Assembly: GCA_009103225.1 (NCBI GenBank)
Contig: RHPI01003728.1
Span: 7,719 to 71,718, forward strand
Origin: Chlorokybus atmophyticus
Taxonomy: Eukaryota; Plantae; Mesostigma and Chlorokybus algae
DNA length: 64,000 nt
Direction of reading: 5' to 3'
Shown: in pieces, positions 43,472 to 46,841 of the stretch
How positions within the stretch are numbered: the stretch's first letter is position 1
Layout of the letters: every line of letters starts with the position of its first letter
The notes under the pieces: generated by a model
Databases searched by the model: none
The model's input: the letters and a program-made list of their open reading frames with translations, nothing else
Told to the model about the DNA's origin: nothing
Translations under genes and position numbers: made by a program

Positions 43472-46400
43472 ATGGCTGTGGGCGATCCTGCCGCCCGCCG
43501 CTTCAGCAACCGCTGCAAGCTGTTTGTGGGCAATCTGCATGCGGATGTCATTGAAGGTAAGGGTTGCTAGTGATCTCCGTTTTCCGTCGCATTGTGTTTG
43601 GAAAGGATCCCTGAGTTGTACAGCTATGGCTATAGGCTGTTGACAGAGACCCACCATATAGCTCAGGGATCAATGCAATGAAGGTTAGGTGTTGGTAACA
43701 CCATTTATAGCCCGCTGTGTGCATATTCTGTGCCGGCCTTTAGACTGCAGTGTGTTGTGGTTCAGCAGCATCGGTTGCCATAAGATCTGCAGCTTCACCA
43801 ACCCTGCAACGGATCAAGGAGTTGGTCAAGTTTACGGGCTTGTAGGCATGATGTTGTGAGGAGTCGTCCCAGCAGTGGGTGTATGACTAGGTACAAATGG
43901 CAACTGTTGAACTTAGCTGAGCATGTCTACGGCTCGTTACATGCTCGCTGGCTGCAGTGTTGTGAGTGTCTCCAGTTTGCTTGCAAAGTTTTGTCTTTTC
44001 AACGTACATTGCCCACGCCGGTGTTGTGCTCAATGCGTCACGCTTCTACTCTTGCAGCCAACCTTGTGTGGGTCACACCTTGCGCTCTGGAGCATCTCGG
44101 CAGTCTGTTATGCAAGCTGAGTTTGTGCTTGCATACACAGATGATCTGCGTAGCTTGTTTGGAAAGTATGGGGAGATAGGCGAGTGCATTATCCAGCGTA
44201 AAGAGGGCGGCCAGTCCAGAGGATTTGGTTTTGTAAAACTTGACTACGCCAGCAATGCTGAAAAGGTATGCTAGCTACCTGAGTGGTTTAGGCTCAGTGC
44301 GCTACAGATGAACTCAGGAGAAACGTAAGCAGCCCGAAGCTGGTCCTGAGTCCTGTTGTCTGTGACATCTCTGGTCTTGATGATATTAATCTGACCTTTT
44401 CAGTTAGTGCTGCTAAAATTCCAATTTTGTCCTGACAGGCAAAATCAGAGATGTCCGGCAAGATCTTTCGCGGTATGTCACATACCGTATTTGCTGCTGC
44501 AAGCATGAAAGCACATACGGCTGACCCAGTGTAGCAAATTCATGTTGGTCAATTTGCGCTGGCAGGACGCAGCTTGGTGGTCAAGTCTGCTGTTAGCAAC
44601 ACCGTCTTGTGGGTTGGCAACCTGGGACCAACAGTCACCAACGAAGTTCTGGCTGTGAGTGCGCAAAGGATGCAACAGCTGTCATTTGCGTTGCTCGGAT
44701 GACTGCCGCATTTTGTGGGCGCCGCCAAAAAGGATGTGGGCCTGTCTGCGTGCAGCACCAACTGTTGCACGGTGGACACAACAGTCATACGAACTTGTGC
44801 TTACAGACCATGTTGGTCGTGTGCAGCACGCATTCTCTCAGTTTGGTGAGTTGGAGCGCGCGGTTGCCGTGGTTGACCCATTGACGAAGAGGTAATGCAC
44901 CTTCTGCCAATTGCAAAGTACCATCTGCAACTGCGTGATGATAACCAGCGTTTTTCGGTTGGACAGATCGCGCGGATATGGTTTTGTTGAGTTCAGCAAA
45001 CATGGCGTGGCAGCTCGTGTACTGCAGGTGCAGAGGTTGCACTGGTCATGCACAGCACTTTGCGAGTTGCAAACCAAGCGTGCATCAATCATGGGCTGAG
45101 CACATGTCCACGTTCTGTTGTCAAGCTTCATGACATTCTTGCCGTTGTTCAACATAGTATAATGCCTTTCCTGATGCAGATGCTGATTGAGAAGCCTTTC
45201 CTAATTGGCGGTTGGCCGCGCCCAGTGCGCATAGACTGGGCGCATGTTGAGGATGATCAGGCAAGTTTGCTGGCTTGCACATCATTCCACATTACATTGG
45301 CTTTGCAAATTACATGCAATTGCGTCAACCAGTGCTGCGACTTGACATGTACACCCGCTCTTTGCAGGAAGGGCTTTCTGAGCGTGAACTGAACCCAGGA
45401 CAGCCGCGGGATGCGGAGAGCTTGGTGCGTGCGAGATTGTGAAGCTTTTGCTCCATGCATACTACCTGTGCTGATTTGTTCTCCTGTGCATTGCAGCCAA
45501 AGCCACACTTTGCTCAACCAGGGACGCTTGAATTTGAGTTTGCCGTACGCTGGACAGATCTCGCTGCAAAGCACCGACTTGAAAAAGCCAGACTAAAAGA
45601 GGTTATTGGCGTGCTTGTTGCAAAGTACAATGAAACTACAATGATATGCCAATGAAGTACGAGTGCATGCCACAAGAGCGCTTGCTAGGCTGAGAGATGA
45701 ACACAACATGAGCAGGCGCAGCAGCAAGAAGTTGAATATCTGTTTAGACAACATGAGGCGGCTTTTGAGGAGCTTCGCCGCAATGGAGATCGCGACGAGT
45801 GGAGGTTGGTTGGGCACTCTGGGTTTGTCTTGTATCACGCACGCACTGCATGTTGTTTGGTGCAGGGTGTGATGGTTGTTTGTTCACAGCAGGTTGTTGG
45901 AGGCCAGGCGCACCTTGTATGACCAGCAGCAGCGTTTCGTTGATCGCAGATCTTTTGAAGCAAGACAGGTATTTGCATTGTGTGGCATCCACTCGTTGGC
46001 AGCACACATACAGTAGAGTTGTGGTCTTGGGCAGCACCTCCCATGCAACACGCTCATCTGGAGTTCTAGCTGTCAATTGACAATGCTCATGCTCATCCAG
46101 CCATTTACTTGACAGGAACTTGAGACGCGCTTGCCAGATAGTCTCTTTCCTTATGCAGAGGGAAGCCCTTCGCATGACCCGCTTCATGTAGGTCTCCTTG
46201 CTTGTAGACGCCCTTCACATGTCCATATAGTTGCAAAGCAGCATGTGCTGGCCCGCATGCTGGCGCTCATTAAACTGTGCATGTTGGAACAGAGACAACT
46301 GCCGCCATTGGCTCCTGGTGTTCCTCTCCGCCAAGAAATTCGTCGTCCTGGCCTGGAGTACTCCAGAATGCTTGGGGGGCGCACTGCGGACTTTCTTAGG

Positions 46401-46841
46401 GGACGCACGCCGGATCACAGAGGGCGCAGCCCCGAAGCAAACTCCATGCGAAGCCCCTCGCGCAACCACGTCAATGGCATGGACGCTCGCGAGCACAGCC
46501 CCATGGATAGTCTGGTGGCCATGAGCGCAGCGATCGGTGGTGAATGGGTGCAGCGTGCCCCTGGCCCTAGCAATGGAGGGGATGGTTTCATAGACGAGGG
46601 ATATGGTTCTCGCGATGAGCTCATGCGATCTGTAAGCACTGAAATGTACGCGGAGGCTCCACGCCAGGCTGCCGAGGTTGAGCATGCAGGCAATTTGCTC
46701 ATGGGTCTCGGGGACACGGGTGTTGCCCTGGCAAGGCGCAGCATGTTTGGTCTGCCCGCTGACATTCAGGACAGCAACCCACAAATGGTAAGCATTCGCC
46801 GCAGCAACCCACAACAGAAAGGCTTTGGCGATATTGTGTAG
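43472..46841 (+). CDS. DBHS-family (NONO/SFPQ/PSPC1-like) RNA-binding protein: RRM1-RRM2-NOPS-coiled coil
   Basis: Spliced exons give [32 protein letters not shown]...GFGFVKL...AKSEMSGKIFRGRSLVVK...[33 protein letters not shown]...GFVEFS...[13 protein letters not shown]...DDQEGLSE...PKPHFAQPGTLEFEFAVRWTDL. Confidence 0.88.

Follow-up and report, generated by a model that had tools for sequence, protein, structure and literature searches.

The window analyzed here is a 64,000-nucleotide stretch of the genome of the green alga Chlorokybus atmophyticus. A gene encoding a relative of the NONO/SFPQ/PSPC1 proteins, the DBHS (Drosophila behaviour/human splicing) family, is located at 43472-47145 on the plus strand, as are all its features given below. 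Manual splicing of the region 43000-47400 produced 15 exons with consistent phases and a product of 508 amino acids. Exons 1 to 5 are located at 43472-43556, 44141-44265, 44439-44472, 44566-44654 and 44827-44891, exons 6 to 10 at 44967-45027, 45180-45260, 45368-45424, 45497-45601 and 45716-45804, and exons 11 to 15 at 45890-45968, 46116-46187, 46293-46787, 46883-46954 and 47128-47145. Translation starts at 43472, with the first ATG downstream of an in-frame stop at 43460, and the stop codon occupies 47143-47145. All acceptors are AG, and all donors are GT except a GC at 45261.

Transcripts support this gene model. Logan contigs from three RNA runs (X1, X2 and X3) in two studies were placed on 43300-47300, and all 14 introns appear as joints in them. 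The GC donor, which had been pointed out in the original prediction, is real. The contigs of all three runs contain a joint (45257->45365) that skips 107 nucleotides, with four letters fitting either side, and it corresponds to a GC-AG intron at 45261-45367 after exon 7. Exon 11 starts at 45890, where the joint in the same runs skips 85 nucleotides (45805-45889). Position 46787 is spliced to the exons at 46883-46954 and 47128-47145, in agreement with the public annotation. The original prediction had placed the end of the gene at 46841. This is a read-through stop; the transcripts add two exons, and the coding sequence ends at 47145. All the algal protein strings it quoted, including a 48-residue one over the GC-donor junction, PHFAQPGTLEFEFAVRWTDL, AQQQEVEYLFRQHEAAFEELRR, are found in the frame-consistent spliced product. 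The public annotation contains the gene as a 495-residue protein (P0001; EukProt EP00898 Chlorokybus atmophyticus, JGI Chlat1 gene Chrsp119S01773), which was retrieved with 100% identity over the query when exon 9 was used in an exhaustive search of representatives.

The N-terminal half of the protein contains two RNA-binding domains. RRM1 (residues 17-85, exons 1-4, 43520-44576) is canonical, matches Pfam RRM_1 and has the βαββαβ fold in the AlphaFold2 (AF2) model. RRM2 (residues 96-160, exons 4-7, 44607-45200) is the second RRM_1 stretch, with LWVGNL as RNP2 and RGYGFVEF as RNP1. In P0001 the two stretches score 119 bits. The linker between them is short: in the AF2 model, RRM1 ends with a strand at 86-89 and RRM2 begins with one at 95-98. 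Tandem N-terminal RRMs with a short linker are part of the definition of DBHS proteins (PMC4872119).

The NOPS segment follows RRM2 (residues 168-219, exons 7, 8 and 9, 45222-45556). It was identified by the Pfam match of exon 9, by a hidden Markov model (HMM) of our own and by colinearity with solved chains. Trp218 (codon at 45551-45553), located in the motif VRWTDL, is equivalent to NONO W271 at the dimer interface, and its alignment column is at least 90% conserved among 22 sequences. W271 is reported to be necessary for DBHS dimerization and paraspeckle localization (PMC8754649). A long charged helix rich in R, E, L and Q, the predicted coiled coil, extends over residues ~210-295 (exons 9-12, 45527-46130). 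In the AF2 model of P0001 it is a single helix of 85 residues (198-282) with a predicted local distance difference test score (pLDDT) above 90. In SFPQ, a coiled-coil interaction motif at 528-555 (L535/L539/L546/M549) polymerizes dimers (PMC11754644). The remaining residues, 296-508 (46131-47142), form a low-complexity tail by composition, rich in G, R, P, A and S. A Pfam scan of exon 13 in this tail gave no match, and the tail has no family resemblance.

The order of these elements is preserved in alignments with animal DBHS proteins. P0001 aligns with SFPQ, PSPC1, NONO and NONO-1 with E values of 1e-36 to 1e-42, in a single stretch covering residues 6-283. A PDB sequence search with P0001 retrieved 19 DBHS entries at 128-148 bits, each in one stretch. 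The phmmer match reaches SFPQ residue 569, and the HMMER alignment is continuous through NOPS. With exon 9 alone, 19 of 20 PDB matches are PSPC1, NONO or SFPQ chains. Judged by sequence, this similarity is far above chance, and we conclude that the Chlorokybus protein is a genuine DBHS relative. The claim of a DBHS-type gene with NOPS and a long helix is therefore upheld by colinearity with solved SFPQ, PSPC1 and NONO chains and by the AF2 helix. The human strings quoted in support of that claim agree in substance with the SFPQ, PSPC1 and NONO equivalents printed by HMMER.

Predicted structures are consistent with this assignment. AF2 monomer models were built on a 22-sequence family alignment and have pLDDT of 83 for the annotated Chlorokybus form and 86 for the ortholog in Mesostigma viride. 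Both contain two RRMs and one long helix, which in Mesostigma spans 91 residues (209-299) with pLDDT above 90. When the Mesostigma model was compared with the PDB by Foldseek, every one of the best 50 matches was a chain of SFPQ, NONO or PSPC1, aligned over 240-300 columns with identities of 34-40%. The template modeling (TM) score between the AF2 monomer model and the crystal chains is low, ~0.48, because the domain arrangement depends on the dimer. In AFDB clusters, as in Atlas features and folds, DBHS clusters ranked first. Plant entries in AFDB match via their RRMs only.

Comparison of the 508-residue product with P0001 revealed a splicing error in the annotation. The only differences between the two are 12 exon-7 residues and a single Ser at exon 11. 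The 12 codons (45225-45260) encode VRIDWAHVEDDQ and are dropped in the annotation, which uses the GT at 45225 as the donor. The corresponding joint, skipping 143 nucleotides, was not seen in the contigs of X1, X2 and X3. The Ser arises from an extra CAG (45890-45892) at a NAGNAG acceptor, for which the transcripts use 45890 and the annotation 45893. VRIDWAHVEDDQ contains the first NOPS strand and an acidic DD.EGL patch. HMMER places a gap of 12 residues in P0001 at exactly this position relative to SFPQ and PSPC1, and the first NOPS strand is present in the AF2 model of the Mesostigma ortholog (168-171) and absent from that of P0001.

Once VRIDWAHVEDDQ and the Ser were restored, the match to the Mesostigma ortholog scored 291 bits instead of 250, and that to fish PSPC1 165 bits instead of 138. 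Our NOPS HMM, built from fish PSPC1, Mesostigma and glaucophyte proteins that pass Pfam NOPS, gave 45.4 bits on P0001 and 65.6 bits on the transcript-supported protein, where it covers positions 1-54 of 55. The gathering score of Pfam NOPS (PF08075) is 27 bits. Exon 9 alone (35 residues) reaches 26.5 bits, and P0001, from which the 12 NOPS residues are wrongly spliced out, reaches 23.9 bits. The precomputed Pfam label of P0001 is PF00076 only, that is, an RRM protein. The missed GC-AG intron probably explains why the Chlorokybus gene has not been labeled with NOPS: one overlooked intron cost 12 residues and probably pushed the protein below the Pfam threshold. GC-AG introns may be missed systematically in the JGI/EukProt annotation of Chlorokybus.

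Relatives of the protein are found in several lineages outside animals. The nearest is Mesostigma viride Mv09710 (P0190, JGI Mesvir1), a protein of 438 residues with 51% identity and 291 bits. It passes PF08075 over the full profile (29.5 bits, positions 1-52 of 52) and carries a precomputed Pfam NOPS label. Two glaucophyte-type proteins, from Cyanoptyche gloeocystis MMETSP1086 (P0027/P0020) and from a related transcriptome sequence (P0063), score 249-259 bits against the Chlorokybus protein and 38-44 bits on PF08075. A large haptophyte-type clan includes Chrysochromulina, Phaeocystis and many marine metagenome sequences. Its members (P0003, P0036, P0044, P0061, P0191, P0192 and relatives) score 19-24 bits on PF08075 and match profile positions 32-52 only. 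One of them, Chrysochromulina tobinii KOO25515.1 (A0A0M0JGF2), is auto-named ‘paraspeckle component 1’ in NCBI and UniProt; Foldseek aligned 267 residues of the Mesostigma model to it. The original prediction that the family extends beyond animals holds for streptophyte algae, glaucophytes and haptophytes at least. Taken together, the annotation error in Chlorokybus and the sub-threshold haptophyte clan indicate that domain-based censuses under-count non-animal DBHS proteins.

A divergent DBHS-like sequence was also found in a Logan contig (P0071; ERR2041015, L001:63-935). It has 290 residues and an RRM2 very like that of Chlorokybus. Its interface Trp is replaced by Leu, Pfam NOPS does not match it, its helix is short and its branch in the tree is long.

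The searches differed in what they recovered. A word-indexed search with the NOPS-plus-coil region of P0001 returned three proteins only. PABP and ELAV candidates dominated the family-profile search, which recovered no animal DBHS protein. The search with the RRM2-plus-NOPS region was the sole one to recover Mesostigma and two fish PSPC1 proteins. As recovery was limited to these two, animal sampling in the tree is minimal. No land-plant or chlorophyte member turned up in these searches, which were no exhaustive test of absence.

The tree contains 25 sequences, only two of them from animals. Support is 100/100 both for the haptophyte clan and for a clan that unites streptophyte algae, glaucophytes and animals, and 89/43 for the pairing of Chlorokybus with Mesostigma. 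The approximately unbiased (AU) test does not reject a grouping of streptophyte algae with glaucophytes (p-AU 0.43), nor a fish branch beside Chlorokybus alone (p 0.28). The tree does not decide between the repeated loss and the transfer put forward in the original prediction. The DBHS family either predates animals or has moved between eukaryotic supergroups. Recent transfer from an animal, or contamination by one, is very unlikely.

An older transfer is an alternative reading. The gene could be a true DBHS homolog that the common ancestor of Chlorokybus and Mesostigma acquired horizontally from a glaucophyte-like or other protist, or from an early animal relative, and did not inherit by vertical descent from an early eukaryote with wide loss afterwards. 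The distribution of the family is very patchy, with neither land plants nor chlorophytes represented in the searches made, and in its inner branching the tree does not demonstrate vertical descent. However, the gene has 14 host-type introns and a host-like composition, and it is common to two anciently separated lineages at only 51% identity. A grouping that the AU test does not reject joins streptophyte algae and glaucophytes, both Archaeplastida, and no animal protein encountered is closer to the Chlorokybus protein than 43-45% identity. We regard such a transfer as unlikely, but as the most probable of the alternatives considered.

The protein could also belong with ordinary two-RRM proteins such as those of the hnRNP or PABP type, its likeness to NOPS being a short motif that arose by chance or convergence. 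The Pfam NOPS score of P0001, its precomputed PF00076-only label and the canonical aromatic residues in RRM2, unlike those in animal DBHS proteins, point in this direction. The low score is however probably due to the 12 mis-spliced residues, and the Mesostigma ortholog passes NOPS over the full profile. The best non-DBHS match of P0001 in the PDB is PABP, at 106 bits in two stretches that cover the RRMs only. The alignment with every solved DBHS protein runs in one piece from RRM1 through RRM2 and NOPS into the coil, ~40 bits above this best RRM-only protein. The non-animal family profile separates members, all at 293 bits or above, from all other proteins, at 198 bits or below. The continuous alignment of the core and this separation bring the idea of a generic RRM protein close to refutation.

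That the gene is contaminating DNA or an assembly artefact, from an animal or another eukaryote, is barely credible and was rejected. In its favor, animals are where the family is best known, and within the green lineage a single clade has it. However, identical transcripts come from two studies, a diverged strain has the same spliced gene, and the gene is closer to that of Mesostigma than to any animal one. In addition, the same 64 kb, at similar GC content, contains Rpb1, a PTM/DIR17-type Tudor gene and a Ty3/gypsy element.

The transcripts also provide evidence on expression and constraint. Contigs 100% identical to the window are found in runs of the same organism from the two studies, and run X3, which has the same organism label, contains a copy that is ~2-3% diverged. 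Among the differences listed between the window and X3, the core (residues 1-300) has 11 synonymous and no non-synonymous changes, and the tail has six synonymous and six non-synonymous changes. The 5' untranslated region (UTR) has 17 changes in the 172 nucleotides shown, again among the differences listed; 11 further differences between the window and X3 lie outside this list. This pattern of substitution indicates that the DBHS core is under strong constraint and purifying selection. The view that this is a host gene and no contaminant is borne out by its introns, the JGI model, the independent identical transcripts and the Mesostigma ortholog.

In the X3 copy, a GGA is also inserted in frame after 46574, and the 3' UTR carries small deletions near 47202-47213. 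The divergence of this copy fits the cryptic Chlorokybus species described in PMC8611356.

Protein-database searches yielded a single Chlorokybus protein of the DBHS type, and the gene appears to be single-copy at this level of detection. As one such protein was found, a homodimer is expected. In the mechanism we propose, two copies would form a reciprocal homodimer in which NOPS, including Trp218, packs on RRM2 and the helix of the partner, as in the solved animal structures (PMC4872119). RNA would be bound mainly by RRM1 (PMC4872119) and possibly, in the alga, by RRM2 as well. The antiparallel helices and the disordered tail of ~210 residues, rich in G, R, P and S, could then promote higher-order assembly on nuclear RNA. 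The protein would act in the nucleus as a multivalent RNA-binding scaffold for the processing or retention of RNA coupled to transcription, independently of NEAT1. With a gene that appears to be single-copy and a conserved interface Trp, the homodimeric nuclear-body system suggested in the original prediction can reasonably be inferred.

We assign a probability of roughly 0.85 to this reading as a whole, in which a transcribed single DBHS gene with the full DBHS core encodes a multivalent nuclear RNA-binding scaffold. Several observations weigh against it. The sole whole-protein Pfam NOPS score for the Chlorokybus gene, that of P0001, is below the cutoff. For the SFPQ polymerization motif no confident alignment was obtained, as the distal helix alone aligns with solved chains for only ~50 residues past NOPS, with weak scores. 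The algal RRM2 departs from the animal pattern, which is not part of the DBHS definition. With two animal sequences, the tree leaves the inner branching of the streptophyte/glaucophyte/animal clan unresolved. Single-copy status comes from protein-database searches and not from a genome scan. That the protein dimerizes, enters the nucleus, has RNA targets and forms bodies is a prediction.

A broader proposal concerns the origin of the system. The DBHS core may be an ancient module that existed before the split between animals and plants or algae and was lost many times. The ancestor would have been a homodimer with two canonical RNA-binding RRMs, and Chlorokybus and Mesostigma would still be building RNA-seeded nuclear assemblies on an algal architectural RNA. 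We offer this tentatively, as possible though doubtful. If it is true, paraspeckle-like organization long predates both animals and NEAT1. To our knowledge, NEAT1, the architectural long non-coding RNA from which paraspeckles are seeded, is specific to mammals and not expected outside them, so any algal body would need another scaffold.

Other features were found in the window. A 1058-residue open reading frame (ORF) at 28541-31717 on the minus strand encodes domains 4-7 and the C-terminal heptad repeats of Rpb1, the largest subunit of RNA polymerase II. Pieces of a Ty3/gypsy-type retrotransposon are located on the plus strand: a gag with a zinc finger at 10499-11689, and at 14697-15425 the C-terminus of an integrase, which includes an SH3 domain and a chromodomain. 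Two ORFs near the DBHS gene matched known domains: a PTM/DIR17-like Tudor domain (31.9 bits) at 52177-52875 on the plus strand, and a U-box fragment (21.5 bits, cutoff 21.4) at 48698-49153 on the minus strand. An uninterrupted ORF of 758 residues at 53532-55808 on the plus strand had no Pfam match. The GC content is 36.5% at 16001-20100 and ~50% elsewhere in the window. Within this region, 19020-20100 contains four ORFs of 264-334 residues that overlap on both strands, and the one that was scanned had no Pfam match. The sequence at 16001-20100 may be repetitive or transposon-derived.

The DBHS family was called animal-only in a 2016 review, and the field has viewed it as an animal invention (Knott et al.). 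Our literature search found no paper on DBHS, NOPS or paraspeckle proteins in algae, protists or other non-animals, and the Chlorokybus/Mesostigma genome paper makes no mention of DBHS. Non-animal DBHS proteins are already in databases with NOPS matches or PSPC1 names. Novelty is limited to that extent, as the Mesostigma NOPS label and the Chrysochromulina name show that members had been catalogued, although no paper discussing them was found. The additions made here are a correction of the gene model and the observation that RRM2 is canonical in the non-animal forms. An expressed and constrained DBHS gene in the earliest-branching streptophyte clade, together with its glaucophyte and haptophyte relatives, implies that the RRM-RRM-NOPS-coil module is older, or more mobile, than the animal-only view allows. 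Single-copy algae offer simple systems for studying the role of the DBHS dimer free of paralog exchange and of NEAT1.

Human PSPC1, NONO and SFPQ (e.g. PDB 3SDE, 5IFM, 5IFN and 4WIJ) have RRM1, RRM2, NOPS and the long helix in the same order as the algal protein, with 34-40% identity over 240-300 aligned positions. They share with the alga the DD.EGL acidic patch, the PxFAQPG..E.E....W motif and the interface Trp. Low-complexity flanks are found in both, but a long N-terminal one is missing from the algal protein. Sequence conservation in the distal coil is poor, and the alga has one gene where human has three paralogs.

Another difference is in RRM2; according to a 2016 review, the RRM2 of DBHS proteins lacks the conserved aromatic residues (PMC4872119). 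Animal RRM2 has T/S, K/R and I where the algal domain has the canonical W in RNP2 and Y and F in RNP1. Where Chlorokybus has LWVGNL and RGYGFVEF, the aligned fish PSPC1 reads LTVRNL and GRGIVEF. RRM2 is also canonical in Mesostigma, the glaucophytes and the haptophytes. Because the algal forms keep the canonical domain, the non-aromatic RRM2 of animals is probably a derived state, which suggests that this odd feature is a later specialization.

Among the non-animal proteins, Mesostigma Mv09710 has the same architecture as the Chlorokybus protein with a different tail, and its NOPS region is correctly annotated. The glaucophyte proteins, known from transcriptomes alone, have a DD.DGLSE patch and RRM2 RNPs like those of Chlorokybus, but differ in a Q/M/G-rich tail and a longer NOPS linker. 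The haptophyte proteins share the architecture and the PPPHFAQPGTLEFDFALKWREL motif. They form a separate clan of ~260-350 residues, without the DD.EGL patch and with a basic KRPR-like tail. Caenorhabditis elegans NONO-1 (PDB 5CA5) aligns over residues 8-241 with an E value of 6e-36 and differs in its animal-type RRM2 and unrelated tail. As a protein of an invertebrate with one or two DBHS members, it provides the closest functional analogy to the single-copy alga.

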